Shown here: positions 3,456-43,185 of the stretch, one piece after another
Layout of the letters: each line of letters starts with the position of its first letter
Position numbering within the stretch: position 1 is the stretch's first letter
Assembly: GCA_003427395.1 (NCBI GenBank)
Contig: BFEA01000001.1
Span: forward strand, 2,780,017-2,844,016
Length of the DNA: 64,000 nt
Source of the DNA: Chara braunii
Lineage: Eukaryota > Plantae > Charophyceae
Direction: 5' to 3'
The notes under the pieces: model-generated
Told to the model about the DNA's origin: nothing
Seen by the model: the letters and a program-made list of their open reading frames with translations, nothing else
The model's database searches: none
Program-made: the position numbers and the translations under genes

Positions 3456-3502
<47 letters not shown>

Positions 3503-4726: not shown

Positions 4727-4787
4727 CGCGCCGCGCCGCGACCCGATAATAACGAGAAGTAGATCGGTAGGTTGAAAGGTCGCCGAC

Positions 4788-8925: not shown

Positions 8926-9020
8926 TACGTGGACGTGATGGCGATGGGTGGGGAAGGTAATACCAGGGGGCCCCTTTCTCCCTCTCATCCTCTTCTTTTG
9001 TTTCCTTGTCTGGCAAATTC

Positions 9021-16268: not shown

Positions 16269-18048
16269 TATGCATACACACACACTCTCTTTTGGAGTTG
16301 TGTATAGCAAACATGACAAAACACAAACACAACATAATTGTTATTTTTTTCTTTTTCTTTTTCTTTTAAGCCCAGGTTGTTGTAGAGGTGGGATACTAGA
16401 CGGATGACAGCCACCCACACGACTCGCCCACTCGGTTGTCCAGATGAACCCCTCTGAAGACCCCACCCACCCTTCCTCTCATCTTTTTGCCCTGGTGCAC
16501 TCCCACCCCCCCTGTCCTACCCTAGTGTTAACCACCCAGGACCATCTTGGCAGGGTGACCTGAGCAGACAGCGGTTGGACGTATCGGGGCTAAGCAGAGA
16601 CTCTTACCCCCTGCTCAGCCCCGGTTGAAGCAGACGCGGTACAAGCCTGATTGCATGGGGACTTCGGGAGCTAGGTATGAACATGCCACTACAGGTCTTC
16701 ATGAGGGTGCACAGTGACTCTCATCTAGCTTAGTTGTGTGGTGATGATAGAGAGTTGGGTATCCTCCGTTCCCTCGTATGTCCCTGGATCCCGTTTCGGC
16801 CATGACACTCCCGACATCCCGTGCGAAAGAACTGCTATGCCAGCCTCAACCCTATGCTACGTACTAGGAGGATAGCCAACCCTAGGTCATGAGTTATGGA
16901 CTGAGTTTCTTATCCTTATGTTGTCTTTNNNNNNNNNNNNNNNNNNNNNNNNNNNNNNNNNNNNNNNNNNNNNNNNNNNNNNNNNNNNNNNNNNNNNNNN
17001 NNNNNNNNNNNNNNNNNNNNNNNNNNNNNNNNNNNNNNNNNNNNNNNNNNNNNNNNNNNNNNNNNNNNNNNNNNNNNNNNNNNNNNNNNNNNNNNNNNNN
17101 NNNNNNNNNNNNNNNNNNNNNNNNNNNNNNNNNNNNNNNNNNNNNNNNNNNNNNNNNNNNNNNNNNNNNNNNNNNNNNNNNNNNNNNNNNNNNNNNNNNN
17201 NNNNNNNNNNNNNNNNNNNNNNNNNNNNNNNNNNNNNNNNNNNNNNNNNNNNNNNNNNNNNNNNNNNNNNNNNNNNNNNNNNNNNNNNNNNNNNNNNNNN
17301 NNNNNNNNNNNNNNNNNNNNNNNNNNNNNNNNNNNNNNNNNNNNNNNNNNNNNNNNNNNNNNNNNNNNNNNNNNNNNNNNNNNNNNNNNNNNNNNNNNNN
17401 NNNNNNNNNNNNNNNNNNNNNNNNNNNNNNNNNNNNNNNNNNNNNNNNNNNNNNNNNNNNNNNNNNNNNNNNNNNNNNNNNNNNNNNNNNNNNNNNNNNN
17501 NNNNNNNNNNNNNNNNNNNNNNNNNNNNNNNNNNNNNNTTTTTTTTTTTCCCATCAAAATAGGTTTCATAGCCCTTCGAATTAAACTCATATGACCGAGG
17601 ATGGGGACCTCACAATTCCACCCGGAGTTATCCTGGCAGCATCAGCCAGTTTAGCTTACGAGCCAAAAGCTCGCCAGTGGAGTAGGCTAGTCTAGGCACA
17701 TAAATGACCAAAACCAGGCCGCTGTCCTGAAACCCCTCCAAGAAGAAAAAAGAAACAGCTTCAAGCCTTAAAAGCCAAACAAAACAAAAAAAATAAAACT
17801 TACCTACCAAAGACCCTGCTAACAAATAGGCTGCCACAACCTACTAACTTTAATTAACTCTCTATATAACCATCCTACGCTAGCCTAAACTAAACAAACT
17901 ATCCTAAGTTCACTGTCTAAAACGACAGGTGGGACCTCCAGGGACCAAACCAAACCTCTGCTGGCACTCCCTCCACGAACTAAGACCAACTGCCTTCCTC
18001 CTGCAGATATCAACCGAGCACCCAAGTTGCTACTCCTAACTATCCTGC

Positions 18049-21000
18049 CTAAAACCATTTGTCAAACACAAGAATACCTTCTTCCAAACTCGCCAACTTT
18101 CCTCCCAATCCCCAGGTTTCGCCAAACCACCTTCCCGAGGTTTTCCTGCCTTTCCTTGCCCAATCCGCCTGAATGGTACGACGCAGAGAGGATTTAAATC
18201 CCATTCTGATTTCTTTGTTGGTCATCTCTCTGTTTTCGAAAATTTGCAGGTTACGTTGCTTCCAAATTACCTCCCATCCCACTGCCCTGGTTGCCTGGGC
18301 GACATATCCCCATCCTTTATGAAGATCCATGTTGTCTGGGATTCCCCCCAGTAGCACCCACAGCCTGTCCCATGACATACAGTGCCCTGAAATAGATTCT
18401 CAAAACTTTTGCCACCAGTCCCAAATGCATTTCGAAGTTGGGCAATCATACCAAAGATGGTTGGTGGATTCATATGCCCAGCCACATCTCTTATAGATTA
18501 TCTCGACTTGCATACCCCTCTGGAACAGAGTAATCGCTGAGGGGGTAGCAAACAGAGAAAGCAACCATGGGTTAACAGTTGCTTGCAAGTTCGGAGCCTG
18601 TACCAGTTGAGACCAGCAACGAGAAATGTTTTTTTCAATCTGGCTGACCTCACAGTCTAACACCTGTTTCCATCGTGAGGTAGCCATTTGAAGTGGGGAG
18701 CAGGTAGGACGTAGGGCATTATATCCCTGGGCTACCGAATACTGAATCAGTGGTAGATTTGCTCCTCCCTCACCTTCTCCTTGCCAACCCCACAATTTTG
18801 GGTCAACTCTTAACTCCATCAATGATTTAACCTGTGCAAACACTCTGCAGGACCACTCACCTTCCTCGTCACAATCTTCCCAGACTCTAGTCTGGAGTAA
18901 TGTCCCGTCCAATGGTGGATGTGTCTCATCCTCTTGGAGGGATAAAAAACTAGGTCTAGATAGGCCTTGCCACTGTTGGAGAACTCTTTTCCCGTTCAAC
19001 TCAATCCTCATGAGCTTCCAGAAGGAAGGACTGTTCGCCAGGGGTCGTGAAATATACCGAGTCACTAGGGGGTCAGTTTCTTTTGGACTGAAGATATGAC
19101 GCCAATCAGTCGGGATGGCTTGAATAAGCTTACTCAGTCTTTCTTCCACATACAAAACAGGGCTCAGCCGTGATCTCAGTTCTAACGGAGAAATCCATTG
19201 ATTGGAGAGGCTATCCCAGATGTCATTGTTCCTAAGTATTCCCCTTTCAATCCAATACCTGCCGAAGCTTTTGCCGGTCGAAGCGGCTGAGAAACAAGAA
19301 CCGTCCTCTGTACAGATATACGAGTTATCGAAGAGTGGTTGTAATAGGACTTCCATTTTCGTGACTGGATTCGACCAGGCGGTTGGCCTGAGTTTCCTCC
19401 AGGCAGAGATTATTGCTCTTCAGAATTTCGACTTAATTGTTCGGTTTTGATATGAGTTAAGCAATAAACACGTCCAAACGTCTGAGGGTCTACTCAAATT
19501 CCATTATGAGGCTAAAATCTCTTTTGCTAGGGAAACCCTGTGGGCATCCTCGAAGGAGCACATCGCTTTAATCATCCACCCGATGAGCATCGCAATGCTT
19601 TTACGCTGGGGGTCCATCGGTCCTAAACCACCTTCCGACTTAGGGAAGCATAACTGGTCTCAAGCGACCTTTGAAAGGAAACCTTCCCTCTCCTTAGCGA
19701 AAGGTTTCCAAACAAACCTGGTTGATCGTCTTCTAATCAAGGTACACAGGTTCCTACCCAGTGGTCTGACGGCAGCAATGAACCACAATAATGCAAAAAG
19801 GGCACAGTTAATCACCATAGCCCTGCCAAAAATTGATAGGTGATATGCCTTACCCCAAGTGGAGATTCTCTGCATGGTACGCTGTAGAAGGATACTCTCC
19901 TGGTCAATCGTACAGGATAGTAAAGCAACATGGACCCCTAAAAACCTCTCCGACTCCCCTGACTTTATTCGTTTCATTCCCCAGTTCACCACCGGAGTGT
20001 GTGGCGCAGGTAGAAAGAACACCGATTTCGACCAATTCACAGATGCTTCTGACAACTCTGAGTATTCGTCCAAACAAGACTTTAAAGCAACCATAAAAGA
20101 CTCGGTGTTTTCGGAGATTGCAAACAAGTCGTCGGCCCCTTTACCTTGCATTGAGAGTTACCTGCTTTCAGACCCCTAATTTCTGGCTTTGCTCTTATGT
20201 TACAAAGGAGGTTTTCTATTTGCAGGACAAACAAGAGAGGGGCCAAGGGACAGCCCTGGCGTAGTGATCTGGTTAGAGCGAAGGGCTCTGAGATATTGTC
20301 GTTCACCATTACTGCCGCTGTTGACTTTGAATATAAGGCGATCACCCATTTACACAGGTTTTCCCCAAAGCCCAGATGTCTGAGTGTAGACAGGACATAC
20401 GTCCAGTTTACACGATCGTAAGCTTTCTCAAGATCCAACATAAGTATCATGACATCTGCCGATGTATTCTCCACTACTTCCAGGGATTCAATGGCCGTTA
20501 CTATATTGTCAAATATAAAACGGCCTTGCACGAAAGCTGCTTGATCTTTGTTCACCAAAACAGGCAGGTATCGGCCCAACCTCCTTGCCAAGACTTTGGC
20601 CAGGAGTTTATATGACACGTTTAGTACGAAAATTGGTCTCCAATTTCTTATTTCGGACCGATCGCCTTTTTTGTATAACAGGGAAATAATCCCATTTCTC
20701 ATTCCCTTTGATAGGCTTGTTCCCAACAGAGCCTGATTATAGATGTCCACAAGGTCTTCTTTAATTGAATCCCAGATCAGTAAGTAGAGCTCAACGGAAA
20801 GGTTGTCATCCCCTGGGGCTTTTCCCTTGGCCATAGAGCAAAGAGCTTCCCAGGCTTCATCCACTGTTACCGGGCGGTCTAGATCCAACTTACCATGTGC
20901 AGAGAGTCTAGCTGTGAATGAGGACCAATGACTAGAACCGTCAGTAAGATCCGCAATAATTTCTTTTTGTGGCCTTCTAGTCGTAAGGATATCCTGATAG

Positions 21001-22249
21001 TACATTGCAGCGTAGGAACACAACTGGGACTGATCACATGCGATTGGGAGTTCCCCATAAAAAAGATGCATCAATTGGCTCATAGGGTGAGACAGACGTT
21101 TCGGGAGCAGCTTTTGGAAGGACTCTCTAGACATTCGATCGTATACTTCAATTTCTTTGACCTTCAAACATTCTGACCACAACTCTGACTGTTCCTGCTG
21201 ATAAGAATCTCACTCAACCATCCGTTTTTCCCTCACTGGGCCCCAGACCAAATTTGAGATGGGATGAAGATTCATCCTCGACTCTGCATATTCGATTTTT
21301 TTAATCATGGCTTTTTCCTGGTTCTTTCGTCCAATTGCCAAGATCCATGAGAAGAGACTCAGATGACTTGAGAAGATGCGAGAACCAGCATCCCACCAAT
21401 CTGCCTTTGAGGGGAAGGAGTCAGCATTCTTCTTCCAATCATTCCAAAATCTTTCCATCCAATCAATTACACCGGGATCCTTGAGGATCTGAGTATTGAC
21501 TCTAAAATAGCCCGGGCCCCTCTCTGGTTTCAAGAAATTAAAGCTAGCCCAGACCGGTTTATGATCTGAAAGAGTCTGTGGGCACTTTACGATGTCTATC
21601 GTGGCATTCCATGCAGCAGGAGAAAGGAGGAAAAAATCTAACCTTCTGCGTATAGTACCTACCCCCTCCCGCACATTAGAGAACCAAGTGTAGCCCGGTG
21701 TTTCCGGATGGAGTAAGCTATGGGGTTCAATTAAGTCCATTTCGGACATTACATCTAACAACGCTTTTACATCTGGATTGCCCCAAATTGACTCATTCCT
21801 GTGCAATGAAGAATTCCAATGCCCAGCAAGGACAAGATGTTCACAGTCTAGGATAACCAGAGGAAGGTCTTCGAAAAATATTCTTCGTTCCCGTAAGTCC
21901 GTTGGAGCATAAATACTGGCGATTACCCATTCTTGACCCTCTATCCAGAGTTTTATCCAGGACCATCTTCCCCAAAGGTCAGCAAAAAAATCAACAATTT
22001 CCGCTTGGAGGTTTCGATGAACTAAAATAGCAACTCCCCTCGTGAGCCTCTGGCCGGGGACCAGATCTGTGGGCCGTCCCACCATGCACCCAAGGCTTCT
22101 ATCTTAGACTCCGACAGTTTGCACTCCTAAAGACACATGATATCGATCTTCTTTTCGTGAATCCAGCTCTTGAGCCTTCCTTTCTTATTCCTAACCGATG
22201 TGTCTCCCAACCCGCGAATATTCCATGAGACAACATTAAGCCTGCCCAT
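18049..22249 (-). pseudogene. LINE ORF2: AP endonuclease, reverse transcriptase and zinc finger
   Basis: Starts MGRLNVVSWNIRGLG, overlapping the ORF1 stop. Endonuclease motifs SIYAP, LAGHWN, YTW, RLDFFL, SDHKP. RT motifs KAPGDD, NWRPI, LDLEKAYDRV, LRQGCPLAP, with a frameshift at the (Y/F)ADD motif near 20135. C-terminal KRC...ESTNHLWYDC. Confidence 0.93.
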
Positions 22250-24393
22250 TACGGGCAGAGGCTCCAGTCGGTTGGATCTGGGAGGAAGAGGAAGAAGGTC
22301 CTGCCATTACCTGAGGCCAGGCGGACACCAAGGCCTGTTTGAGAAACTGCGAGTTAAGTTTCTTGTCCTTTCCCAGTTTTGCGTTCAATTCAAACAGGAA
22401 TTCGGCGGATAACTCCGGAGACACTTGAACCCTCCGAAGATCGGATTTGCTACCCTCTGTGAACCAGGCTAGTGGGAGCAGCCGAACCCCTTCGGTCTCG
22501 AGATGCTCCAACTGACCTGGATGGAAGCAAGCATCAAAGAGAGGGGAGTAATACTTAGCCCTTGTGTCTACCAGAAACCGGGGCATGAAGATCTCAACGA
22601 TGATACGCATGGAAAGCTTATTCTGAAACAAATTCCTTGCAAGTGTTTCGGAGGCAAACGACATCGGAGATTCCGGACAATTCATATTAAATAACATCGG
22701 GATACCATCCGGTCCCAGCTAAGCAATTATCCAGATTGAATCGCGAACGAAGGAACAAACTATCGGTAGGAGCTTGGTTTCCATAACCGATTGTCCTTTG
22801 GACAGGGAATACATTCGGGCATGAGTAGATTTGCGCTTACCTGCCATTGACGAGGGAGTGCCAGAGTTGAACGAACCTTCGTTCGAGCTGCTCGAGGCTT
22901 CTGCACGAACCTCATCAACCCGGATCTCAATACCACCTCCTTCCGAAATCCGCCTTTGTTTCCCGGCGGATTCACCTCGGGATCGGCTTCCACTGAATAC
23001 TTGCCCCTGTCCTCCCACAAGGGGGGGGGGGAGGAGGTATTGAGCTGCCATTCCCAAGTTGCCTGGTTGTTGCCTAGACAACGTACAAGTCCAGCCTTGA
23101 CTCCAAGGAACAAAGGCGTGAAGGTTCGTGAGAGACGGGCTTGCGCCCAACTGAGACCCCATCTGTTGACCTATCGGCTATTGCATAGCGAATGGGTGCG
23201 GGGGTATCCCTTGCAGAAAGAACAACCATCCGCCCGGTACCATAAACCAGTACCATGACCGGATTAGTTGCGCCAACTTGGGATGCATGGAGATTACCGA
23301 CCGCTTGATGTGCTGGTACACCTCCTGGTGAGAACATTGGATTGCTATGTAGGTTGACTCCTGCCGCAACACTTGATCCTGCCGGGGCCGCTGACGAAGC
23401 CGCATTACCTTGTGGCTGTTGCTGAAGACTTCCTCCCGGGGCGCGAAGCGAACCTTGGTGAAGCTGCTTTGCGCTGCCAGCTCGAGCGTTGAACGTAGGC
23501 TGCTGACTGTTGGAAGACCCACCTCGAGTTCAACGACTCGGTCTCCTACAGGTATCCTCCGTATGGAAAAAATTGCGGCATCTTCCGCACCACTCCGTGT
23601 CGGCATTTGCCAACCTGACTTCCAGCATGTCTCCTTGGTGTGTTTGAATCCAAATCTTGTCTTTCATGCAATCTCTCTTGGATGGCTCGATATCGAAACG
23701 TAGATTCACCAACTTAGGATCCGTCTCGTCAGCTTCGGGAAGATGGCGCTTCAGGATTTTGCCGATGGCTCTTTCTACATGTACATGAATAAACACCATC
23801 TCATCGAGAGGGACTCCGACAACCACCACCCAAAACGTATCTTGATCTACCAACTTCCTCCAATCCTTGAGCTCTGCACGAGTCATCCATGGTTTAAATT
23901 CTGTGCGGTATATAACTCCCGCCAGTTCTATGAAGTCCGATCGCTTAGTGAGCATCCAATTAGTGACCTCTTGGGTTCTTGGGATATACGAAACCACGTT
24001 AGGACTCTCCACCTTTATCCTGCCCCGCTTGAAGTCTTGTCCAAACAATTCATCGCTAATCCAGCCATCTTCATAAGCTCGGATAGCATCTTCCTTCACC
24101 TTCCTTGGCAAAAACCTAGCCCCCTCTCGAAAGATTACTGTGACTGTCCTTCCTTTGAGCCACTTCACCTTGACTTCGTCCACCGAGTTGTTTAAGGTGA
24201 ATTTCACCTCTCTTCCATTGACTTCCATGACTCCTGGGTCAATGTCTGTTGGAACGATGCCTTCCTCGTAACAAGCTCTGACCATTTCCAAGACTCGTTC
24301 CTCCTCCATTCGATAATCTCCAGGTACTTGGCTCCTTGCCTCTTGGTCTGTTCCCCCCTGCAGGGGGGGTTCTGCTTCCATCTTGGTTGACAA
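22236..24393 (-). pseudogene. LINE ORF1 (frameshifted, long C-terminal extension)
   Basis: FKPW...FWVVVVGVPL...AIGKIL...NLRFDI...WCGRCRNFFHTEDTC, the plant L1 ORF1 pattern with CX2CX4HX4C. Continues in shifted frames to the stop at 22236. Confidence 0.8.
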
Positions 24394-24929
24394 CCAACCT
24401 TGCTTCGAGAAAGTTCTTCCCCTATTACGAGGCGGAATACTAACTAGATAGCAACAGAGATGTTACGTACTGCACGTATATAAGCTGAAACGTATGGCAG
24501 TGTAGACGGGGCAGGGCAGAGGCATCTAGTTGCTGACGTCACCAGCTATGGCCACCGCCATAGTCCCTTGACAAGGCAAGGGTATTGGGGCGTCACCCAC
24601 TACTACCACGTCGGAAATTGCGCCGCCAACCAGGCCTGCCGAAGTAGGCGACTTTACGACCGAGCGCCGTAGCGCCAGCGGTAACGACGGTCCGAAAGTT
24701 CATTCTCGTTGGTCCACGTTTGGTCGCTACGGGGTTTTCCGTAATACTATAATGACAAACATAAAGGCCTGAAAGGCCTTCCTGTCCAGATTCGACTCTG
24801 CAATATAGCAAGTTGTTATCCAGCAAGCCTGGTCGAAGTCAATGTTCTCTATTCCCTCCTTCCATGTATGTAGGCTGGGGGGCAAGTACGTGGGGTGTCA
24901 TGGCAAGAGCGTGCCCAGGAGAGCATAGG

Positions 24930-25336: not shown

Positions 25337-25711
25337 GGCCGTTTCCTCCGAGCGCGCCACCTCTTTCCACCACCTGGTGAGGGAAGGGCACAAAGCCGCA
25401 CGATGTGAAACTCATCCTTTCAGCGCAGGGCGCCTCCGGCCGCACCTACGATTACATTACGAACTCGACAGCTCGCCACCGGATGCAGGCGTACGTGGGA
25501 GACGTTTGTGGAAATGATCCTTTCGGGCGCGCATCGCGTTTTGTCTAATGCCCGCCGGGTTTAAGTACCCTGTGTCGGTTTTGACGCGGTCGCGCCCTTC
25601 GTTGATATCGCGGCCACGCCATCGTTGAAGAGCCCAGCGCGGGCACGGCGTTGCAGGACAAGGAGGAGAAGGGAAAGGGCGCGATCGAGTTCAGTGACAA
25701 TTGTTGAACCC

Positions 25712-26821
25712 ATGGCGAGCGCGGGGGTCTTACGTGGCGCTTGTCCGGCGGCTATGGCTGCGGCGTGCGTGGCGCCGTCTAGCTCTGGTTCTCACCCGAC
25801 CGCATGTTCGACAGGAGGGGGGGTTGGCGTGCGGGGAGCAGCTAGAATATGCGACTTCGCGGGACTGCGTGCCAAAGGAGCTGCTGTGGACAGGGGATCG
25901 TTCATGGGGACTTGGTCGACGGAGCAATCGGCGAGGAGGAGGTTTGGGCACGTGCGTAAGGGCGAGAGTCGACAGCGAGAAGGGGTCGTGGCGAAGGTTC
26001 GGGAGATTTTCATGCCGGCGCTTAGCTCGACGATGACGGAGGGGAAAATTGTTTCATGGCTGAAAAGCGAAGGGGACAAGCTTGCGAAAGGAGAGAGTGT
26101 GGTTGTGGTCGAGTCCGATAAGGCTGACATGGACGTCGAGACGTTCTACGAGGGAATCTTGGCGGCGGTGGTCGTGGGCGAGGGGGAGGTTGCGCCGGTC
26201 GGTGCGGCCATTGGGGTATTGGCGGAGACGGAAGAGGAGCTGAGCGAGGCACGAGCGAGGGCGGCGAAACTTGGCGGGGTCGGGGGCGGGGGCGGCGAGT
26301 CCGCGGGCAACGGAGGGGCGCAAGTGGCGGCGGAACCGACGGCGCCAGCTCCGGAGCCCGTCCCTGTTCTCGCGTCTGTGGGCGCATCGCCCGCGACGGC
26401 GACGGTGGCGGCGCCCGCTCCGCCGCCCGCGCCTGTCGTGTCCACTCACCCCTCCGCCGTGGGGGGGAGGATCGTCGCGACTCCATACGCCAAGAAGCTT
26501 GCCAAGGAGTTTCAGGTTGATCTCCACACTGTGAGAGGATCAGGGCCGTTAGGTCGCATCGTTGCGGCGGACGTGGAGGCCGCGGCTGGAAGACCGCCCT
26601 CCGCGGCGGTGGCTGCGCCTCCTGCGTCTCCGTCGCCCTCCGCCGCTCCTTCCGCTCCTCGTGCTCCCGCCGCCGCCGCGCCAGCTGTCTTGGGCACCAC
26701 CGTCCCGTTCACCACAATGCAGGCGGCTGTCGCGCGCAATATGGTCGCCAGCTTGTCCGTCCCGACGTTCCGAATCGGCTACACCATCAACACGGATGCC
26801 TTGGACGCGCTCTACAAGCAG
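25712..26821 (+). CDS. LTA2: Plastid pyruvate dehydrogenase E2 (dihydrolipoamide acetyltransferase), exon 1: transit peptide, lipoyl domain, E1/E3-binding domain, start of catalytic domain
   Basis: ATG in CCATGG context. Ala/Ser/Arg-rich leader with FAGLR. Lipoyl domain EIFMPALSSTMTEGKIVSW...VESDKADMDVE. Binding domain ATPYAKKLAK...GSGPLGRI. PFTTMQAAVARNM. Donor CAG|GTGTGG, phase 0. Confidence 0.95.
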
Positions 26822-27706
26822 GTGTGGTTGCTACTTTCTCGGCCTTTTTTAGAGAGCTTTGTTTGTTTTCGGTGCTGGTCTATGAGGTATTTCCGCTCAC
26901 CGAGATTGGTTTGTACGTCTCCCCGATGTATGCATTCTACTATAGCTGTTGGGATCTCTAGTTCTATCGGTTAATCAATTCATCGTTTATTAATGTCGTT
27001 GTGTCCCGACATCTGCAATGTTATCCTTTTCTGACGTATCTGAGGGCATACGCACACTAGCACTTTCCAAAATGTATCTGACCGCAATTACGGCCATGCC
27101 TCCACGAATCTAACGGCAATCACGTCCAGGGCGTGGAGGGAAAAGTCTTCGTCTGAGTATGCCTCGAGTATGGGCGGTGCGCACGTCTCCTTTGTGCTCT
27201 CTCTTTCCGCGTGCCTGCTTTCAGTTGTGGCCTGGCGGTTGCGTTGTGCTGGGATTCGCTGCAACAATGCTCGGTCGGTATCGCAGTTGCCTCCCCGCTC
27301 CCGACCTGAGACGTTTGGTCGCAGGGTAGATTCCTGGTTTGCCTTTGTGTCATTGAGTGATGGTCTCTTTCTGTTTTGGGCTATTTGGGGAATGCTCTCT
27401 TTCTTTCTCTGTTTACGAAATCTCCTCGGAACCTGCTGTTGAGGAGATTCAAGGATAGCACGGATCTTCAGCTCCCTCACACCGTAAACTAGAAAGAATG
27501 ATTACAAGAGGGGGGGGGGGGGGCGTGGGTCCTTGTAATTTTCTGGGTGTTTGTGACATATACAAAGCGAGAAATTGTCAGTGTCGGTGGGTTGAACGGA
27601 GTCAATGCGAAGTGATGTGGAATATCTTCTTTTGGTGACCATAATAAGCAATTTGTCATCAGAGCTAGACAATCAATCCGCAGACCAGAGGGCGCTCTCA
27701 AGACTA

Positions 27707-27844
27707 CCATCTTCCCCCGAATAGAGCGTACCGCATTATGGTGTCTGTAGACGGCGTGTCGCCCGAAAACACGTGAAGTGTTTGGGGCAACAATCGGTCT
27801 ACTTACCGCAATAATGACCGTGCGTCCTAGTCGGGAGAAGACGG
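27707..27844. mobile_element. Short Tc1/mariner (pogo-like) MITE in intron 1
   Basis: TA|CCATCTTCCCCCGAATAG ... CTAGTCGGGAGAAGACGG|TA: imperfect TIRs with TA duplication. Confidence 0.55.
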
Positions 27845-27908
27845 TAGTGCTTGATAACGAGTTAAACGATCTCTTATTACATTCATTCTAATGACATGCG
27901 ATTATTGG

Positions 27909-28000
27909 GACATTCTACTATTATGACATTCTATTATTATGACATTCTATTATTATGACATTCTAGTATGATATTCTATTATTATGACATTCTATTATTA
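27909..28000. repeat. 16-bp minisatellite (GACATTCTATTATTAT)n
   Basis: About 6 tandem copies. Confidence 0.9.
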
Positions 28001-28620
28001 GATAGATATCTAATTATTAGTACGCTCAACGCTCAATCACCTACAGTACAGCGTGATAAGGCCTATCTCGTTCCCCGGTGGGTCGTTCTACCAGACCAAT
28101 AAAGCCTCTGGCCCCGCTCAGATTGACCCTGACGACCGTGGCGATTCGGTGGTCCAGAGGAGCGCTTAATGTAGTGAATGAAGTCGAAAAACCGAGTATT
28201 GGGAAGAAGACAGGCTCGGACATCCTGATGAGCGAGTGCACGTACGTATACATGAGAGGGTTCAGCCTATTGGGAAGAAGACAAGGTCGGGCATCCTGAT
28301 GATCGAGTGCACGTGCGTATAGATGAAAGGGTTCAGCCTCGTGATGAGCCGGTGAACTCCGACAAAAGCCTGTCACCGCCGCTGGTTTGTTGTCCTCTTC
28401 CCCCTCTCTGCCTACGGTTCACCGGGCAGACCTCTACTGCGATATACGATGGCCATGGCGGTGATTTCATGTGGGACCTGTCATCCGTTTTTTTTTAATC
28501 CTTTTGGCATCCTAGTTGGCTGTTTACTGTTGTTCGGCCTGTGTGTAAGGGGGCGTTGCTTTTCTGTGGGAATCGTCGTCCGGGATTGTCTTTTATACAT
28601 TTTTTTTTGCCGTTGGTGGA

Positions 28621-28656
<36 letters not shown>

Positions 28657-30544
28657 AGAAGAAAAAGAAGAAAGACGGAAGCGATACCAGTTCTTGCAAC
28701 AAATAACAATCGCAAAGGAGTTTTGGAGTTGACGCAGAGTCGCTTCTTGTTGTTTGTTATCTGGGATTGCTTGTTTGCAGGCAAGGGTGTTTTGATATCC
28801 TGGTTGGTCTTGTCCCGTCGTTTGGCCTGTGACGGAGGGGCCGATGCTTGCATGTGGGACTTGTCATATAGGATCTGTTTATGTTTGTTTCCCCCTGTTT
28901 CGTTATGTTTGGCTGTTCCCTCCTCTTTCTTTGCCTCTTTGCCTTTTGGCTGTGTGCAAGTGGTTCGATATGACACACGGGGGTGGGGCCGGCCGCCGCT
29001 CAACCTACATCCACGTGGGCGGCCTTGTACGCAAGAGGTTTTGAACAGGGGGAGTTGTAGTAAGTAAAAATATATCGTCACGCAGTGTATCAGAGCGCAA
29101 AGGCGGAAAAAACAAAACAGAAAAAGGAAAGAAGTGAGGTTAAAAAGCTCCGCTTGTTCATCACCTCTTACGTACAAGGCCGGCTACGTGGATGATGGTT
29201 GAGCACCGGCTACCCCCATCACCGTGGGTCACAAGGACCCACTTGCACGCAGCCAAAAGGCAAAGAGGTGAAGAAAAGGAGGAAACCAAACCTCACTTGT
29301 AGGACAGATAAACGCATGCTCTTTTGTGGTGACCGTTCTTCCTTCATTTTGGCCTGCAATCGACATGCCATTTGTCGGGGGTGTATGGTGGGCATGCTCA
29401 ATGCCAGCCGGCGTGGCAATTGTTGCACTGAGAATGTGCAGCTAGGTCTTATATGTGTCCATCCACCTCATCTAAGATGTATGTCCTCTCTGTCGTTAAG
29501 GACGGACGTCAAGGAAAGACTCATTCTTGAGCCTTTTCTTATCGTTTTTTATTTATCTTCACTCCACACTCCATACTTTCCGTTACTCACCTTCATCGTT
29601 CTTTTTTTGTCTGCTCTCCATCTCTCCTCCTGTGTATCCCCTCCCCCTTCACTCTGCCTCTATCTCACAGCGTACAAGTGGGCTGTTATGGCACACGGGG
29701 ATGGGGGCAGCTCGCGCTCAAATTCATCAACGTGGCGAGCCTTGTACGTGAGAGGCACGGTGAAAGGGGAATCAACAGAAGAATGAGAAAAATGAATGGT
29801 TTCAGTGCCCTTGGTGTTTGTCTTGTTTTTTATTTTTTTTAATTTTTGCCGTTTGTTTCCCGAAGTGCGCTCTTTTAGTTCATAGTTATCTGACAATATA
29901 GAGGTTCTGAACAGGGGGAGTTGTAAGGAAGAATATTAAAAAACGAATTCATTTTTTCATTTTTTCGCTTTTGCGCTCTGATATTCATGTGACTATATAT
30001 ATGTGACGATATATATATTGTCATATATGATATATATGTATATATATATCGTCACACTGTAAATCAGAGCGCGAAGGCGAAAAAAAGCAAAACAAGGAAA
30101 GGAAAAGACGGCCTGTTCATCACCTCTTACGATTAAGGCCAGCCACGTGGATGACAGGTTGAGCGCTGGCTGCCCCCATCCCCGTGTGTCACAAGGACCG
30201 ACTTGCACGCAACCAAAAGGCAAAGAGGTAAAGAAAAGGAGGGGGAAACCTCCTGACAGGGAAACAAAGCAAATGACACATCCCACAGATAATCCAATTG
30301 TCATATTTTCTTTTTTTCTCTTTTTTCCTTTTCTATCTTGTTTGGCGGCCTTGTACGTAAGATGTTCTGAACAGGGGGATTGTAAGGAAGAAGATAAAAA
30401 AACGAATTCATTTTTTTCCTTTTTCTTTTTTCTTTTTTTTTCGCTTTTGCGCTCTGATATTCATGTGACGATATATATATCGTCAAACAGAGCAGCCTAA
30501 CTGTATGCATAGAGGAAGAAGAGGACAACAAACAAGGGGCTGAG

Positions 30545-30604
30545 GCAAACTGTTTCGTCGGAGATTCACCGACTCATCAGGAGGCTGAACCCTCAACATT
30601 CTGC
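30545..30604 (-). ncRNA. Type III hammerhead ribozyme (antisense copy)
   Basis: Exact reverse complement of 31415-31474. Confidence 0.88.
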
Positions 30605-31414
30605 AGAATCGCCTTACTGATTACACTGTAATAATCCACCGTTACCCAAGTAGATATATGACAGTGGCAACTGGTTTATCTGTGGGATGTGTCATTGCAT
30701 TGTTTGACTGATAGGCCTTCCTCTTCCTTTGTCTTTTCTTTGATTGGATCTTTCTCTTTCTCTTGCCTCTGTGTGGTCTGGTTTCCTCCTCCGTGTCTTT
30801 ACCTCTTTGCCTTTTGGCTGCGTGCAAGTGGGTCCTTGTGACACACGGGGATGGGGGCAGCCAGCGCTCAACCTGTCATCCACGTGGCTGGCCTTGTACG
30901 TAAGAGGTGATGAACAGGCAGAGCTTTCTCTCTTTCCTTTCTCTGTTTTGTTTTTTTTCGCCTTTGCGCTCCGATACAGCTCTGCCTATTCATCACCTCC
31001 TACGTACAAGGCCGGCCACATGGATGTATATATCGTCACCACGTGTATCGGAGTGCGAAGGCGAAAAAAAACAAAACAGAGAAAGAGGGAAAGCTCTGCC
31101 TGTTACATTACCTCTTATGTACATTGCCGGCCACGTGGATGACAGGTTGAGCGCTGGCTGCCCCCATCCCCGTGTGTCACAAGGACCCACTTGCACGCAG
31201 CCAAAAGGCAAAGAGGTTAAGAAATGGAGGAGGAATCCAGACCACACAGAGGCAAGAGAAAGAGAAAGATCCAATCAAAGAAAAGACAAAGGAAGAGGAA
31301 GGCCTATCCGTCAAACAAAGCAAATGACACATCCCACAGATAAACCAATTGCCACTGTCATATATCTATATGGGTAACGGTGGATTATTACAGTGTAATC
31401 AATTAGGGGATTCT

Positions 31415-31474
31415 GCAGAATGTTGAGGGTTCAGCCTCCTGATGAGTCGGTGAATCTCCGACGAAACAGTTTGC
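31415..31474 (+). ncRNA. Type III hammerhead ribozyme (sense to host pre-mRNA)
   Basis: GCAGAAUGU-U^ GAGG-guucag-CCUC CUGAUGA GUCGG-ugaaucu-CCGAC GAAA CAGUUUGC. Complete core and stems I, II, III. Predicted cleavage after GUU at 31424. Confidence 0.88.
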
Positions 31475-31697
31475 CACAACTTGTTTGTTGTCTTCTCCTC
31501 TATGCCTACGGTTTACCAGGCTGCTCTGTTTGACGATATATATACATATTTCTTTGTTTCGTGGGTGTTTTGCTGGCTTGTGATGGGGTGTGAACCGACA
31601 GTCTGTAGAGTTTTCCATCTGGTGTGGGTGAGTGATAGTCTACTTTGATTTTGGCTAGGTGGATTATCACTTACAGTGTAATCAGTGAGGGGATTCT

Positions 31698-31760
31698 ACA
31701 GACTGTTGAGGGTTCAGCCTCCTGATGAGTCGGTGAAACTCCGATGATGAAACAGTTTGT
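31698..31760 (+). ncRNA. Hammerhead ribozyme copy with 3-nt insertion before GAAA
   Basis: ACAGACUGU-U GAGG..CCUC CUGAUGA GUCGG-ugaaacu-CCGAU gau GAAA CAGUUUGU. Stem III has 9 bp, but the core junction is disrupted. Confidence 0.7.
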
Positions 31761-32437
31761 CACAGCCCCTCGTTTGTTGTCCTCTTCTCCCTCCCTGCCT
31801 ACGGTTTACCGGGCAGTTCTATTTGACGATATATATACATCCATGTGGCCGGCCTTGTACGTAGGAGGTGATGAATAGGCAGAGCTTTTTCTTCTTTCCT
31901 TTTTGTGTTTTGTGATTTTTGTCTTTATTTGCCTTTGCACTCCGATACACGGTGTGACGATATATATATTGCCACAAGAATATCAGAGCGCAAAAGCGAA
32001 AAAAACAGAAAGAAAACGAGGAAAAAATGAGTTCCTTTTTTTATCATGTTCATTACAACTCCCCCTGTTCAGAACCTCTTGCCTACAAGGCCGCCCACGT
32101 GGATGTAGGTTGAGCGGCGGCTGTCCCCACCCCCGTGTGTCATATCGACGCACTTGCACACAGCCAAAAGGCAAGGAGGCAAAGACAAGAGGAAGGAAAC
32201 CGCCGAACACAACAACCACGTCGACGGGACAAGACCAACCAGGATATAAAAAAACCATGCCTGCAAAAAAAGGAATCAATCTATTGCGACTGCCGCCGTC
32301 TGTGCTGAAGGATGTCTAACAAAGCATAAAAGACAATCCCAGATGATGATTCCCACATAAAAGCACCTCCCCCAAATGCACAGGCCGAACAACGGGAAAC
32401 AACCAACCAGGATGCCAGAATAAAGAAGAGCCCGGAT

Positions 32438-32562
32438 GACTAGTCGCACATGAAAGCACCGCTACGCATCCCAAAATAGACTAGTCGCACATGAAAGCAC
32501 CGCTACGCATCCCAAAATAGACTAGTCGCACATGAAAGCACTGCTACGCATCCCAAAATAGA
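32438..32562. repeat. 41-bp tandem repeat x3
   Basis: GACTAGTCGCACATGAAAGCACCGCTACGCATCCCAAAATA at 32438, 32479 and 32520. Confidence 0.95.
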
Positions 32563-34980
32563 CCGAAGCAGCAAATTAAGATGGCCCGACGGCAGTGGAA
32601 TAAGGTATAAAGGAAAAGCTAGGAACATAACACACGAAAGCAGAATACACAAGAACATCAGGCAATTTCGTCAGGACTGGCCGGGTGGGGAACCGGGAGG
32701 GTGGGGGGGAGTGGATGGCCGAGGTGGTCGGGAAAGGGGGGTTGGAAGATGACCCGCCAAGCCTCAGGCGAGACTGCAAGCTGGCCTTCCACGAGTGGAC
32801 TAAGATTGGGGGGCATGTCCCCTTCCGGCCCCCCTCTGATTTCCCGGACCCTTTTGCCCCGAACACTGTTTTTGGTCGACTTGCATTGGTATGGGGTGGA
32901 GTGAAGAAGACATGCTTAAAGATGGTTTTCTCTGGCGCCTGAGCAGCAGGGCAGAAGAGGCAGGCCCCGTACCCCCCCCACTCAGTCAATCCCCCGGTCC
33001 ACCGGGGCAATCAATGCTGGCGGGCTCAACAGGTTAACAGTGCCATGGAGTTTTGAGACGTGAAGGCAAACATCGTGTTTATGGGACAATGGAACCGTTT
33101 TTCAGCAGTTGCTGCCCCGCACCAATAGATTGGGGCCATCCACAGAGCCCTACTACTGCAGGCTGCTCATCTCAACGGCAGTAGTTGGTCCTGGGGATGC
33201 TTAAAGGAAAAAAAAGAGAAGTTCCTTTTTTGTTTTTGTTTTCCCTTTTCCACCCCTCCTCAAGGGCCATGCAGATATTCTGTTCACTTTCACCGCCATC
33301 ATCATAACTTCTAAGTTCTGCTTTTCGTCAACACAGCTAATTAACTTGGCAGCAGAATTTAAGTCTGCTTCGCACGAAGCTGGCAAGCCTCACCTCGCAG
33401 AGTCATTTCTGTTCATCGGCCGACCATTGCCTACCAGCGTACATCATGCTCGCTTGTAGAAGTAGAGGACTCTGTAGCACAAGAAGAGAGGACCGCTTTT
33501 TTCCTGTACCAGCACGCAGAATCAAGCGTGCATTCTGTCCGTATTCTCTGCATTTCAACACGGCAGAGCAGGGTAGTGTTGTTGCGAACGTCGAGGAGAA
33601 CTCGTGTCCGTCTTTCCAGAAAAGAACTGACGGTCCTTATTGGTTTATCTGGACTGAAAGTTGTGCCAAATGCAAGCATAATAACCGTACGTTATATTCG
33701 GAGGGTGAAGAAGGTAGCAGGAGGAAATTCAAGTTCATGGTGCCTGTTGCTTGGCTCTCTGAAGTGTACAGTAGGAGGCTTCTAGCAATCACGCCGGATA
33801 CAGTTTGTGAAGTCATGTGTAGAAAAGGTTGCAAGGAATTTAGCTAGGCAAATAAGGGAGAGGTGTTGGACGTTTGTTTCACCGTAGCGGGGTACTTTTT
33901 TTTTTTTTTTCCCCCTTTCACGGAGTGGTTGGAGGGCAGCAACAAATCTGGACCTATTTTTACCTGTCACTTAAATCGGGTTATTCGTTTCCCAGCCACC
34001 TGTTTACCCAGTATGTGTGGCAGGGGTTTCTCATGGACCTCGCGGGACTCATATGAGGGCTGGGTTTTATTCCCTCTAAGGGGATACTCACTCCATGGCT
34101 TTCCTTGATGTATCTGACTGGGACTCACCATATGATCAGCAAGTGGCAACTTTGGTGCCCCAAATTCAAAGAAACAAAAAAAAATGCTGTAAACATTTTG
34201 TTGTCTAGAATTGAAATGCAGTCAACTTTTGGCTGAGGATTACTTCACAATTCCTTCTAAATTCGGAAATTGAAACAAGAAAACAAAAAGCAAAACCAAA
34301 CGTGCCCCGTGGAAGTCAACCCCCCTTTCAACTCCCTTTAACACCCATGTATTCCTTTTAAATTTGAATATAACGCCCGGGCGTTCTATTCGAAGGGGCG
34401 TTCTATTCGAAGGGGTATTTGGAAAAAAGTGTTATTTTTGGTTGAAGACGGTGGTGTATTATTATCTCAGAAAGGCAGCAGGCGTTCCTAGATACAGGCA
34501 GTCGTGCAGCTGTTGCAGCTTTTGATCACCAGAATGGAGGGCATGTGGAATGAAAGATCTTCTCTGGTTTAGGGTGTAAGGATTTGGGGTGAAGTGGTGT
34601 AAATAAATGCGTGTTCAGGAGCGTTTTGGAATTTGATTCAGGGTCTTTTGGGGAATTTTGTGGCCGAAGATGCGGGTGTTTTCTAGGTACTTTTGTGGGC
34701 CATGATTGGGGCGGGTTCGGGAGTTTTCTGGCCTTGTTTTCTTTTGGGATTTCTGTTGCCCGAGTTTCAGGTTATTTTCTTTTGGGAGTGTTAACAATGT
34801 GTGGTTTGAGTGGGTGGCAATAGCTGTTGTGCAAGCTGTGTATGGCAATAGCTTGCAGCCTGAGTTTCAGGTTATTTCCTTTGGAGCATGTGAACGACGT
34901 GTGTGGTTTGCATGGGTGGCAGTGTATGGCAATAGCTTGCAGAAGCTGATCCCATTTGTATTGCTTGGATATGGTTGCAG

Positions 34981-35172
34981 ATAAAGTCGAAGGGCGTCAC
35001 AATGACAGCTATGCTTGCTAAAGCGGTTGCTTTGGCACTTGCAAAGCATCCGGTTGTCAATGCGTGCTGTAAGGATGGGAAGTCGTGCACCTTCAACAGC
35101 GATGTCAATGTTTGTGTAGCGGTGGCCATCGACGGTGGTTTGTTGATCCCTGTCCTTGAGAAGGCCGACAAG
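34981..35172 (+). CDS. LTA2: Plastid PDH E2, exon 2
   Basis: TTGCAG| IKSKGVTMTAMLAKAVALALAKHPVVNACCKDGKSCTFNSDVNVCVAVAIDGGLLIPVLEKADK |GTAAGG; 192 nt. Confidence 0.95.
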
Positions 35173-36145
35173 GTAAGGTGATTGATTACCAAGCTCGTCC
35201 TTTAATGAGAAATGGTTTCCTAGGGGGTGGGGCGTGGTGGATGTGATAATATGTGATTGGCTTGTGGCTGCGATTTGCTGGAGTGCGGTATAGTGGTTTT
35301 GAGTGGCTTGGACGGGTTTGGAGTGGTTTGGAGGCCTGTGACTGTGAAGAGTTGTGGTTGAGAGGGTGGGCGGCAGATGGGGTGGACTGTGAAGAGTTGT
35401 GGCTGAGAGGGTGGGCGAGAGATGGAGAGGCCTTGTGTGGTGATGTGAACGGGAAGTGTGAGTGGTTGTTGTTGTGGAACGGTCATCTGAGATGGTCATG
35501 GTTGAGATGGTGGAGTGGCAGCCTTGTGGTGAGGTCAGTAAGAAGTGTGAGCAGTCGGTGGCAAAGAAGGGTCATCTGAGAGGGTAATGACCGGGATGGT
35601 GGAGTGGTGGGGGTTGTTGGCAGAACCGAGTGTCATGATTGAGAGGGTGGAGTGGTGGGGTGTGGGGGGAACTGAGTGTCATGGTTAGTATGGATTGAGA
35701 AGGGGGCGAGGTCTCGAGAATGATCATCGAAGACTCTGAGAGAAAGGGGAGCAGGGTGGGCGGGCAAGTTGGGAGGAATGGGGAGGGTAGGGTGGGGATT
35801 TCTGCTGAAGGATTGAGAGTGAACTATTAAGCACCGTGGTAATTTGAAGAGGTTATGTTAGATGGGGGAGAGTGAACTATTAAGCACCGTGGTAATTTGA
35901 AGAGGTTATGTTAGATGGGGGCAAGGTGCTCCAACGGTGGGTTGGTATGAGTTCATGGGGGGAGGAAGGAAGGAGCAAGATCAGGAGTAGGTGGCTTTGG
36001 GTGGTATGATGGTAGGGTATGACATGATGTGTGGATAGCAGTGGTCGACCTGACCTCGCCTTTGATCCTTTGTGACCTTGGCTAACAGTGAGCTTGGCTC
36101 ACCTTCGTGTGTGTGTGTGTGTGGTGTGGGTGGGTGGATTACCAG

Positions 36146-39125: not shown

Positions 39126-41080
39126 NNNNNNNNNNNNNNNNNNNNNNNNNNNNNNNNNNNNNNNNNNNNNNNNNNNNNNNNNNNNNNNNNNNNNNNNNNN
39201 NNNNNNNNNNNNNNNNNNNNNNNNNNNNNNNNNNNNNNNNNNNNNNNNNNNNNNNNNNNNNNNNNNNNNNNNNNNNNNNNNNNNNNNNNNNNNNNNNNNN
39301 NNNNNNNNNNNNNNNNNNNNNNNNNNNNNNNNNNNNNNNNNNNNNNNNNNNNNNNNNNNNNNNNNNNNNNNNNNNNNNNNNNNNNNNNNNNNNNNNNNNN
39401 NNNNNNNNNNNNNNNNNNNNNNNNNNNNNNNNNNNNNNNNNNNNNNNNNNNNNNNNNNNNNNNNNNNNNNNNNNNNNNNNNNNNNNNNNNNNNNNNNNNN
39501 NNNNNNNNNNNNNNNNNNNNNNNNNNNNNNNNNNNNNNNNNNNNNNNNNNNNNNNNNNNNNNNNNNNNNNNNNNNNNNNNNNNNNNNNNNNNNNNNNNNN
39601 NNNNNNNNNNNNNNNNNNNNNNNNNNNNNNNNNNNNNNNNNNNNNNNNNNNNNNNNNNNNNNNNNNNNNNNNNNNNNNNNNNNNNNNNNNNNNNNNNNNN
39701 NNNNNNNNNNNNNNNNNNNNNNNNNNNNNNNNNNNNNNNNNNNNNNNNNNNNNNNNNNNNNNNNNNNNNNNNNNNNNNNNNNNNNNNNNNNNNNNNNNNN
39801 NNNNNNNNNNNNNNNNNNNNNNNNNNNNNNNNNNNNNNNNNNNNNNNNNNNNNNNNNNNNNNNNNNNNNNNNNNNNNNNNNNNNNNNNNNNNNNNNNNNN
39901 NNNNNNNNNNNNNNNNNNNNNNNNNNNNNNNNNNNNNNNNNNNNNNNNNNNNNNNNNNNNNNNNNNNNNNNNNNNNNNNNNNNNNNNNNNNNNNNNNNNN
40001 NNNNNNNNNNNNNNNNNNNNNNNNNNNNNNNNNNNNNNNNNNNNNNNNNNNNNNNNNNNNGGGGGGGTTAGTTAGTCAGAATGGGGTCTCTCTCTCTTTC
40101 TCCCCCCCTCTCCCTCCCTCCCCTGCATGCGTGAGTGCTCGTGCAGATCTTTTCTCTTTTCTGAAACGGAAGGGCTCAATGGACCACGGATTAGATATGA
40201 AACTAATTGGAGGAGATACTACACGTGAGTTAGATTGGGGTTTCTCGGTCACATACACACACACATCAACTTTATTTCTCTCTCTCTGTCTCTCTCTCCC
40301 CCCCACGTGCGTGTGCCCTCGTGTGTTTTGTTTTGTTTTGTTTATTTGTTGATATGACTTGATGGATGATGGATCGGATATGAAACTGCTCAGAGCAGAT
40401 ACTGCACTTGATTGGGGGGGGGGGACATGGGGGGGGAAGGTGGCGTGCAGTTTGTTAGATTGTCTTCTCTCTCGCGCGCGTGCACACGCGTACGTTTTTT
40501 TTTCTTTTTCAAAAAGGTGTCGATGGACCACGGATCAGATATGAAACTGATCGGAGCATATACTACACTTCATCATGATGAGAGGGGGGGAGGGGGGGGC
40601 AGGGGGGGGGAGTGGAGCGGGGTGCGAGGTTAGTTAGTTTGGGGTCTCTCTCTCTCTCTCTCTCTCTTTTGCTCGCTCGCTCGCTTGCACACGCATGCCA
40701 CTTTTTAGAAACTGATTGGGGCAGGGGGGGGTGTAGTTAGTTAGAATGGGGTCTCTCTCTCTCTCACCCTCTCTCTTCTCTCTCTCCCTCCCCCATGCGT
40801 GCGAGTGCTCGAGCAGATTTCTGTTTTTTTCATCTGAAAAAGGTCTTGATGTAGCACGGATCAGATATGAAACTAATTGGAGCAGATACTACACGTGAGT
40901 TAGATTGGGGAAGCTGTGGAGGAGGGGCAGAGGGGAGCAGAGAAGCTGTGCAGAAGGTGGGGAGGATGAGGAGTGGAGGGGCAGTGGAGGAGAGGTGCGG
41001 AGAAGCTGCGGAGGATCTGTGGGGGAGGGGGAGCGGGTGAGCGGAGTGGGATGGCTCTCTCTCTCCCTCTCTCTCTCTAT
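37016..41080. repeat. CT-rich low-complexity repeat complex in intron 3
   Basis: ~37190-37690 is duplicated at ~38595-39065. Recurring GATATGAAACTRATTGGAGCAGATAC and GTTAGTTAGAATGGGGTCTCTC modules. (CT)n tracts. Spans gap 39126-40060. Confidence 0.8.
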
Positions 41081-42790: not shown

Positions 42791-43061
42791 GTCCGGGACA
42801 TCCATGAAAGGTGGAACGATTTGGACAAGATTACTATGGTCGTTTGGGACATCCATTAGAAGTGGAACGAATTGGAGAAGATTAGCAATGGGCCCTTGGG
42901 ACATCCATTAGAAGTGGAACGAACGATTTGGAGAAGATTTGCATGGGCCTTTTGGGACATCCATTAGGAGTGGAATAATTTGGAGATGATTAGACATTCA
43001 CTAGACGTGGAACGATTTGGAGAAGATTAGCACGGCCCCTGTGCAAGGATAGAAATGGTTT
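42791..43061 (+). pseudogene. Five tandem U6 snRNA-derived units in intron 4
   Basis: Unit GGGACATCCATTAGAAGTGGAACGATTTGGAGAAGATTAGCATGG versus U6 GGGACATCCGATAAAATTGGAACGATACAGAGAAGATTAGCATGG. The last unit extends GGCCCCTGTGCAAGGAT..AGAAATGGT. Confidence 0.85.
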
Positions 43062-43185
43062 AAATGAGTTGTAGCTATGGGTTAAAATGTAAGTTCAATT
43101 GTGAGGAATTTAAGTGTCCTGCATATATTTTGAAACTGTGGGTGAAATTTTGACGTAATTTCCACTTTCTCTCCTGGTGGTGCAG

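Follow-up and report, generated by a model that had tools for sequence, protein, structure and literature searches.

Two short (TA)n-associated repeat families, one of them bearing a type III hammerhead motif, nested in an intron of the Chara braunii gene CBR_g46

Introduction

Intron 1 of CBR_g46, the Chara braunii gene for plastid-type dihydrolipoamide acetyltransferase (the E2 component of pyruvate dehydrogenase), holds a nest of inverted and tandem modules with four hammerhead motifs, and here we consider its origin within a 64-kb stretch of contig BFEA01000001.1 (the window; positions refer to it unless another locus is named). The nest is probably a (TA)n microsatellite of this intron that was hit repeatedly by two short non-coding retroelement families, designated H and OP, and only H carries a hammerhead. 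An initial annotation, made from the letters alone, had described the same segment as one fold-back family with type III hammerhead ribozymes, non-autonomous and possibly constituting an undescribed algal group of retrozymes.

To our knowledge, genomic type III hammerheads of eukaryotes have until now been linked to the long terminal repeat (LTR) retrozymes of flowering plants, and Penelope-associated retrozymes of the non-LTR kind to the type I hammerheads of animals. The plant elements are composed of two LTRs of ~350 bp, each with a type III hammerhead, a primer-binding site (PBS) for tRNA-Met, a polypurine tract (PPT) and 4-bp target duplications (PMC4918200; definition in PMC7229834). The animal ones are short self-paired PBS-less units with type I hammerheads, found as regular tandem arrays and as circles (PMC7229834, Cervera & de la Pena 2020), and are proposed to be derivatives of Penelope-like elements (bioRxiv 10.64898/2026.07.22.740005, Li, Clavereau & Pollet 2026). 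For C. braunii itself, Craig et al. (2021) reported canonical hammerheads in Penelope-like elements of the Chlamys-2_cBra and endonuclease (EN)-minus types (PMC8557442); microsatellite targeting, 5′ truncation and tandem or inverted insertions are characteristic of Penelope-like elements (PMC8557442), and no short non-coding family is described in that work (PMC8557442).

The window was compared with ten other C. braunii loci (231 kb, assembly GCA_003427395.1) chosen via reverse-transcriptase (RT) genes of long interspersed nuclear elements (LINEs) as anchors, and all copy counts given below cover the resulting 295 kb in 11 regions. L011 denotes the 1.1-kb public contig BFBZ01014625.1 from a metagenome collection, the one match in a scan with the 26-nt hammerhead core; the same core had no match in a viral contig collection.

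Results

Hammerhead motifs of the nest

Infernal search with the Rfam model RF00008 (Hammerhead_3), the first check that the initial annotation had proposed, gave three matches in the nest. Copies 1 (31417-31472, plus strand) and 2 (30547-30602, minus strand) are identical in sequence and score 37.6 bits with E 1.5e-5 in a 6-kb search, in which copy 3 (31700-31758, plus strand) reaches 36.7 bits with E 2.8e-5; for the whole 64-kb window and 4227 families the same three hammerheads have E-values from 1.7e-4 to 3e-4. All scores lie under the gathering score of the model (48.5 bits), so that the hammerheads are listed only under E-value reporting, and a default Rfam scan of the window with gathering thresholds lists only a U6 small nuclear RNA (snRNA). 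The fourth motif (28327-28372) is recognizable by sequence in decayed form, which brings the number of motifs to the four initially proposed.

According to the cmscan alignment and the sequence itself, the core CUGAUGA ... GAA-A is framed by stem I (GAGG/CCUC, 4 bp, loop GUUCAG), stem II (GUCGG/CCGAC, loop UGAAUCU) and stem III, which in copies 1 and 2 is AGAAUGU/ACAGUUU with one A.G mismatch. Stems I and II of the three-way junction are closed and stem III is open, as is distinctive for type III, and in this respect the early assignment proved right. The cleavage triplet is GUU, the predicted cuts following 31424, 30595 (minus strand) and 31707, and CUGAUGA, GAAA and GUU are all present in copies 1 and 2. 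The complementary tetranucleotides UUCA and UGAA occur in loops 1 and 2 and could give a loop-loop contact of the kind typical of natural hammerheads. The three-helix fold has the minimum free energy (MFE), or nearly so, for copy 3 and for the consensus-like copy in locus L009, in which the core is intact, no insertion is present and stem III extends over 7 bp (AGACUGU/ACAGUUU).

The defects of the window hammerheads are private to the window copies. Copies 1 and 2 carry a C->A change in stem III and an A->U change in loop 2; copy 3 contains three extra bases within 31744-31749, immediately 5′ of GAAA, in line with the core-region insertion noticed at the outset; and the remnant 28327-28372, with C3->G and G12->A, is dead. 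Since a better-kept copy, L009:1951-2006, scores 45.8 bits (the highest value in the H family, also under 48.5), the motif is to be regarded as a family feature and not as a chance match.

Two families with a common end

H and OP both end with ..TGACG(AT)n. The 122-nt leader of H begins directly after (TA)n in both sequences where it was seen (L011:783- and L009:-2211), and the full length of H is therefore set at ~410 nt, comprising this leader, an imperfect hairpin of ~205 nt with the hammerhead in its 3′ arm, and a tail of ~80 nt. Window copy 31549-31835 is 95.8% identical over 288 nt to L009:1874-2158. The family is represented by ~25 copies in 6 of the 11 regions, ~20 of them outside the window, corresponding, by very rough extrapolation, to 10^4-10^5 copies per genome. 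No open reading frame (ORF) occurs in H, and the idea of a non-autonomous, non-coding, ribozyme-bearing algal repeat family is borne out; the epithet "undescribed" applies at most to this short non-autonomous form, hammerheads of Chara Penelope-like elements being already published.

OP is 570-620 nt long, non-coding and without a hammerhead, matches no Rfam family, and is collinear in three unrelated loci (window 28458-29075, L003:13956-14526 and L008:1452-1813). Its conserved core of ~105 nt displays a 6-bp stem (window 30860-30865 / 30887-30892, alignment columns 88-93 / 115-120) that varies on both sides among nine related sequences (GCCAGC/GCUGGC, GCCGCC/GGCGGC, GCUCGC/GCGAGC), crosses an invariant CACG/CGUG + GAUG/CAUC helix and may form a pseudoknot. 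This stem lies approximately where H has its hammerhead and also has no matching Rfam family; it was proposed by eye, and RNAalifold finds little covariation in its own structure for the OP core.

Several H derivatives deserve separate mention. L011:1-1110 has A-runs at both ends, Chara-type H copies and the only complete 122-nt leader seen, and has the appearance of Chara DNA or cDNA that entered another data set. L009:997-1078 (plus strand) is a derivative with a deletion from H ~129 to ~205 that joins two ACAG motifs and takes out exactly the hammerhead and part of the hairpin. L003:20650-21368 (minus strand) is a diverged relative with the same 5′ arm, a CTGCC-rich minisatellite of ~400 nt between arm and ribozyme, and an unrelated tail; its hammerhead (L003:20762-20836) has a GUC triplet of canonical form and a stem III of 7 perfect pairs, with G12 deleted. 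This copy runs off the locus end and may represent the 3′ portion of some longer element, which might be autonomous.

Copy ends point to retroposition

All H copies share the 3′ end ..TTTGACG(AT)n and nearly all are preceded by (TA)n. Nearly all copies outside the window are truncated at the 5′ side with the 3′ end constant, and the 5′ ends, expressed in H coordinates, are distributed as follows.

H position 18: 1 copy
H position ~103-109: 3 copies, two of them the palindrome arms of the window
H position ~157-163: 3-4 copies
H position 170-180: 5 copies
H position 201-212: 6 copies
H position 222-270: 5 copies

The combination of a constant 3′ end with variable 5′ truncation points to retroposition by target-primed reverse transcription and not to cut-and-paste transfer of a fold-back element. 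The small cluster at 157-163 is compatible with copying of RNA that had cleaved itself, the predicted cut falling between H positions 159 and 160, and the larger one at 201-212 lies at the hairpin base, as would suit a structural stop of the polymerase; neither amounts to proof. The common ..TGACG(AT)n end means that every insertion restores a target for further ones and lets nests expand. In L009:1000-2413, nine H copies are arrayed head to tail, each situated in the (TA)n tail of the next one.

The sampled sequence was also inspected for a donor of RT. The linkage of H to Penelope GIY-YIG/RT genes, which the initial annotation had suggested to check, gave no case of continuation into coding sequence among the ~25 copies. 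The window has two large coding elements of other kinds. An L1-like LINE (17540-24400, minus strand) with endonuclease, RT and zf-RVT domains ends in poly(A) beside an assembly gap; it was rejected as the partner of H, since poly(A) is not the (TA)n in which H ends. A gypsy element (2900-9000, plus strand) has zinc knuckle, protease and RNase H domains and a PBS-like TGGTATCGGAGC at 2914-2925.

A sense-strand hairpin that covers the ribozyme

Folding of the 287-nt H copy revealed a long imperfect hairpin in the sense strand with an MFE of -116 kcal/mol (z -7.1 versus shuffles), and only -65.5 kcal/mol (z -1.35, no better than shuffled) in the antisense strand. From 19 to 21 of ~81-86 hairpin pairs are G.U, which become A.C mismatches in the other strand and thus render the hairpin specific for sense RNA. 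The 5′ arm of the hairpin, paired to the hammerhead-bearing arm, itself reads as an antisense hammerhead, with differences that are almost all transitions keeping the pairing in sense RNA.

According to these folding models, H RNA masks its own ribozyme thermodynamically. Forcing the catalytic fold costs +28 kcal/mol in H copies bearing the hairpin, ~0 kcal/mol in the 5′-truncated copy 31379-31547 taken alone, and +94 kcal/mol for the same copy within its palindrome, where it forms ~520 bp of duplex with the antisense H copy upstream. Copy 1 would accordingly combine a mismatched stem III with being locked in a ~520-bp duplex with its antisense twin, and copy 3, with the 3-nt insertion beside its core, is predicted to lie within its own hairpin.

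Composition of the nest and its host intron

ORF 25625-26974 is 100% identical to the NCBI protein CBR_g46, and tblastn with this protein placed exon 1 at 25712-26824 and exon 2 at 34969-35175. This placement puts the nest into intron 1 and makes the plus strand the sense strand of the gene, so the exons flank the nest in the way that its supposed position in a core metabolic gene implied. Two ORFs of ~195 aa inside the nest gave no Pfam match, consistent with its proposed non-coding nature. Self-comparison of the window showed many direct and inverted repeats within the nest and no further copy of its modules elsewhere in the 64 kb. Four H copies and at least 10 OP copies, in both orientations and with (TA)n remnants between them, make up the nest, for a total of at least 14 insertions in 4.3 kb. 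The features are listed below with their strands.

26825-34968, plus: intron 1 of CBR_g46, bounds approximate, from tblastn
28197-28338, plus: two 71-nt tandem units containing CCUGAUGAG, each ending with the first 12 nt 3′ of the hammerhead cut site (GAGGGTTCAGCC)
28328-28446, plus: H copy 5′-truncated at H position 161, just past the predicted cut, holding the decayed remnant 28327-28372
28458-29075, plus: OP copy, near full length, with a ~160-nt insertion (28597-28757) including an A31 run, collinear with the L003 and L008 copies named above
29065-29296, minus: OP 3′ part, tail-to-tail with the preceding copy across (TA)n
29591-29849, plus: OP 3′ part, old and diverged (65-70% identity)
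29900-30002, plus: OP 3′ tail fragment ending in (TA)n
30039-30297, minus: OP 3′ part
30344-30480, plus: OP 3′ tail fragment, 92% identical to L003:14388-14526
30472-31547, no strand: palindrome of 1.08 kb with arms 92-95% complementary
30472-30649, minus: H copy 5′-truncated at H ~103, with hammerhead 30547-30602 (minus); outer part of the left palindrome arm
30650-30978, plus: 3′ 330 nt of OP, inner part of the left palindrome arm, with the covarying stem 30860-30865 / 30887-30892
30973-31027, minus: short OP fragment, palindrome centre
31027-31368, minus: 3′ 330 nt of OP, inner part of the right palindrome arm
31379-31547, plus: H copy 5′-truncated at H ~104, with hammerhead 31417-31472 (plus), predicted cut 31424/31425 and the private A.G mismatch in stem III
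31549-31835, plus: H copy with complete hairpin and tail, without the 122-nt leader; hammerhead 31700-31758 (plus), predicted cut 31707/31708
31836-31969, plus: OP copy, 5′-truncated, with (TA)n on both flanks
31960-32462, minus: OP copy, near full length, forming the outer inverted repeat with 28458-29075
32438-32563, plus: three 41-nt tandem repeats at the right edge of the nest

The two palindrome arms are built alike, each from one truncated H and one truncated OP lying head to head. As the arms share both this pair and identical truncation points, the palindrome is explained by inverted duplication of one composite and not by four events. Priming on both strands of one break would be expected to yield a head-to-head pair of this kind, in which the two tails point outward and each adjoin (TA)n, and the composite may have arisen in this way. 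The outer inverted repeat consists simply of two OP copies in opposite orientation. The fold-back description is thereby retained for the inverted and tandem, Penelope-resembling architecture and abandoned for the single family: two (TA)n-targeting families and one inverted duplication took part, with the ribozyme in H only. The 71-nt units at the left edge were considered as a second or permuted hammerhead and rejected, having no copies in the other loci, no Rfam match at E up to 10 and no convincing stems.

With regard to the host gene, copy 2 is antisense to CBR_g46, and the ribozymes of the window are probably weak or silent, all copies being truncated, mutated or masked; in the pre-mRNA they would then remain silent. 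The locus is a set of truncated, mutated passengers in an intron, ordinary for the C. braunii genome.

Relation to known ribozyme-bearing elements

Among the established systems, the Penelope-like elements of Chara resemble H, as far as their published description goes, in occurring in the same species, in a canonical hammerhead near the 3′ end, in insertion directed to microsatellites, in frequent 5′ truncation, in insertions of tandem or inverted form and in reaching very high copy numbers; they differ in length (3-8 kb against ~410 nt) and in encoding RT with or without GIY-YIG, where H has no ORF. The metazoan non-LTR retrozymes share with H the small size (170-400 nt), the non-coding and self-paired sequence, one hammerhead per unit, the lack of LTR, PBS and PPT, and very high copy number. 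They have type I hammerheads and cut-to-cut tandem units, in contrast to H, which is type III, dispersed, ends in (TA)n and is mostly 5′-truncated. H does form arrays (L009:1000-2413 and window 31379-31835), with units that are unequal, mostly truncated and each terminated by (TA)n. Circles have been shown for the metazoan elements, and H is known here from genomic sequence.

Angiosperm LTR retrozymes (Cervera, Urbina & de la Pena 2016, PMC4918200) are likewise non-coding, non-autonomous members of the green lineage with a type III hammerhead in strongly paired RNA. They borrow the gypsy machinery, and none of their LTR or PBS features was found for H. No LTR pair exists, H copies elsewhere being single units with one hammerhead and the local H-H pair being two insertions with different 5′ truncations, and the tRNA-Met PBS TGGTATCAGAGC has no match with up to 2 mismatches in any H copy. 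The (TA)n flanks of H hide any short target duplication, and there is no LTR boundary by which to place a PPT. Identity with plant-type retrozymes was thus rejected for lack of LTRs and of the tRNA-Met PBS. The PBS search gave 9 matches in the window, close to the chance expectation of 4.5. One of them, GTGTATCAGAGC at 29085-29096 (plus strand) in an OP copy, is a 10/12 match to the plant tRNA-iMet primer-binding site, antisense to the presumed OP sense and ~20 nt from the (TA)n end; other OP copies retain only ATCAGAGCGC at this site.

Avsunviroids and viroid-like hammerhead RNAs resemble H in having a type III hammerhead buried in a rod-like, G.U-containing fold and inactive at equilibrium. 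They are autonomous or satellite circular RNAs with hammerheads in both polarities and no DNA copy; H is genomic DNA with a hammerhead of one polarity, its antisense arm having lost the core. Taken together, H is closest to the non-LTR, Penelope-style retrozymes and may be described as a non-LTR, type III, (TA)n-directed retrozyme-like element with predicted ribozyme activity.

Dispersed snRNA-like sequences

Three unrelated loci contain U6 snRNA-like copies that exceed the Rfam gathering score, together with U2-like fragments; the positions concerned are window 42978-43083 (plus strand), L003:11473-11567, L008:2652-2761, window 40490-40588 (minus strand) and L003:15943-16049 (minus strand). 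Dispersed snRNA-derived copies seem common in the C. braunii genome.

Discussion

The arrangement of the nest is probably best accounted for by a history in which an intronic (TA)n tract was hit again and again, in both orientations, by H and OP, and one head-to-head composite of the two was later duplicated in inverted form to give the 1.08-kb palindrome. H RNA would be copied into (TA)n by target-primed reverse transcription with RT supplied in trans, for which a hammerhead-bearing Penelope-like element of Chara (Chlamys/PLE-X) appears to be the likeliest source. Self-cleavage by the ribozyme in vivo, or a block to reverse transcription imposed by the hairpin, may have generated the many 5′-truncated dead copies.

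Several observations weigh against this account. All hammerheads of the window (37.6, 37.6 and 36.7 bits) lie under the RF00008 gathering score. Stem covariation, which had been named as a check, is missing from the hammerhead stems of the H family, where no compensatory change was found and all changes are one-sided decay; its absence is expected for a young family of dead-on-arrival copies, so that covariation gives no support. The 5′-end cluster at the cut site is small (3-4 of ~24), and ordinary 5′ truncation or the hairpin stop could explain much of it. A pattern search of six-frame translations of the 295 kb found no GIY..YIG ORF, and no Penelope-like ORF was found either, Pfam analysis of the large ORFs of the window giving only gypsy and L1-like domains. 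Finally, the usual Chlamys targets are reported as (CA)n and (C)n (PMC8557442), as opposed to the (TA)n in which both H and OP reside.

The same material can be read as that of a circle-forming non-LTR retrozyme, in which H-H arrays are transcribed, both hammerheads cut and the released unit is ligated into a circular RNA serving as transposition intermediate. Two sense hammerheads do lie 283 nt apart in the window; the local cut-to-cut unit would be 31425-31707 (283 nt, highly self-paired) and represents a circular permutation of the H hairpin plus tail, the rod-like shape and strong self-pairing of H RNA recall the 170-400-nt circles of animal retrozymes (PMC7229834), and serial insertion into (TA)n tails makes tandem arrays of the kind seen in L009. 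The genomic copies, however, are not circularly permuted: all of them end at the (TA)n tail and none runs from cut to cut, the arrays are made of truncated units without the 5′ strand of stem III, and both hammerheads of the local dimer are impaired, so we regard circle formation as possible but unlikely. With similar reserve we treat the wider proposition that H is a working streptophyte-algal non-LTR retrozyme with a viroid-style type III hammerhead, a rod-like G.U-rich RNA, insertion into (TA)n and circles of ~290 nt arising from arrays; this is a tentative possibility to which we incline little.

It is also rather unlikely that the H copies are nothing else than 5′-truncated 3′ ends (pseudo-LTRs) of an already catalogued Penelope-like family of Chara, either Chlamys-2_cBra or EN-minus PLE-X. 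The canonical 3′ hammerhead, the frequent 5′ truncation, the insertions in tandem or inverted form and the very high copy numbers that Craig et al. (2021) reported for C. braunii (PMC8557442) agree with this explanation, and so does the diverged relative L003:20650-21368 (minus strand), which joins the same 5′ arm and hammerhead to a different tail and extends beyond the locus end. Its weakness is that the leader following (TA)n at once in L011 and L009 delimits a ~410-nt unit devoid of an ORF, and that 0 of ~25 copies continue into coding sequence; the lack of a GIY..YIG ORF in the 295 kb counts in the same direction, the sample being small.

That the motifs are look-alikes, catalytically inactive in every copy, we consider improbable. 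Subthreshold Rfam scores, a stem I of only 4 bp, the lack of covariation within H and the 28 kcal/mol by which the hairpin disfavours the active fold speak for it. They are opposed by the presence of every invariant core position in the consensus-like copy, by three helices in register with a legal NUH triplet, by a single-family E-value of ~4e-8 per 64 kb (a derived figure) together with the 45.8 bits of the best copy, by the complementary UUCA/UGAA loops as in natural hammerheads with loop-loop contacts, and by the fact that hammerheads are established in Chara retroelements (PMC8557442). A DNA-level fold-back or miniature inverted-repeat transposable element family with terminal inverted repeats and TA target duplications, suggested by the palindromic junctions GTGACG(AT)nCGTCAC, the nested inverted repeats and the TA flanks, is very improbable, given that the copies are not uniform and have one constant and one variably truncated end, each such junction is formed by two tails that converge on a single (TA)n tract, other loci show H and OP singly and in one orientation or the other, and the H hairpin works in one RNA strand only via G.U pairs, which is unexpected for DNA inverted repeats.

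Under the preferred account of repeated insertion into intronic (TA)n, sense-strand ribozymes within a housekeeping gene are tolerated, probably through masking or breakage, and the self-masking hairpin amounts to a natural on/off design for a ribozyme. If it is true, an abundant Chara family that joins a type III hammerhead to non-LTR, microsatellite-directed, Penelope-like insertion would take ribozyme mini-retroelements back to the streptophyte algae and would bear on the origin of plant retrozymes and of hammerhead viroids. Should H turn out to be a working retrozyme, it would be a missing link that connects the Penelope-derived retrozymes of animals with the hammerhead viroids and type III retrozymes of flowering plants.

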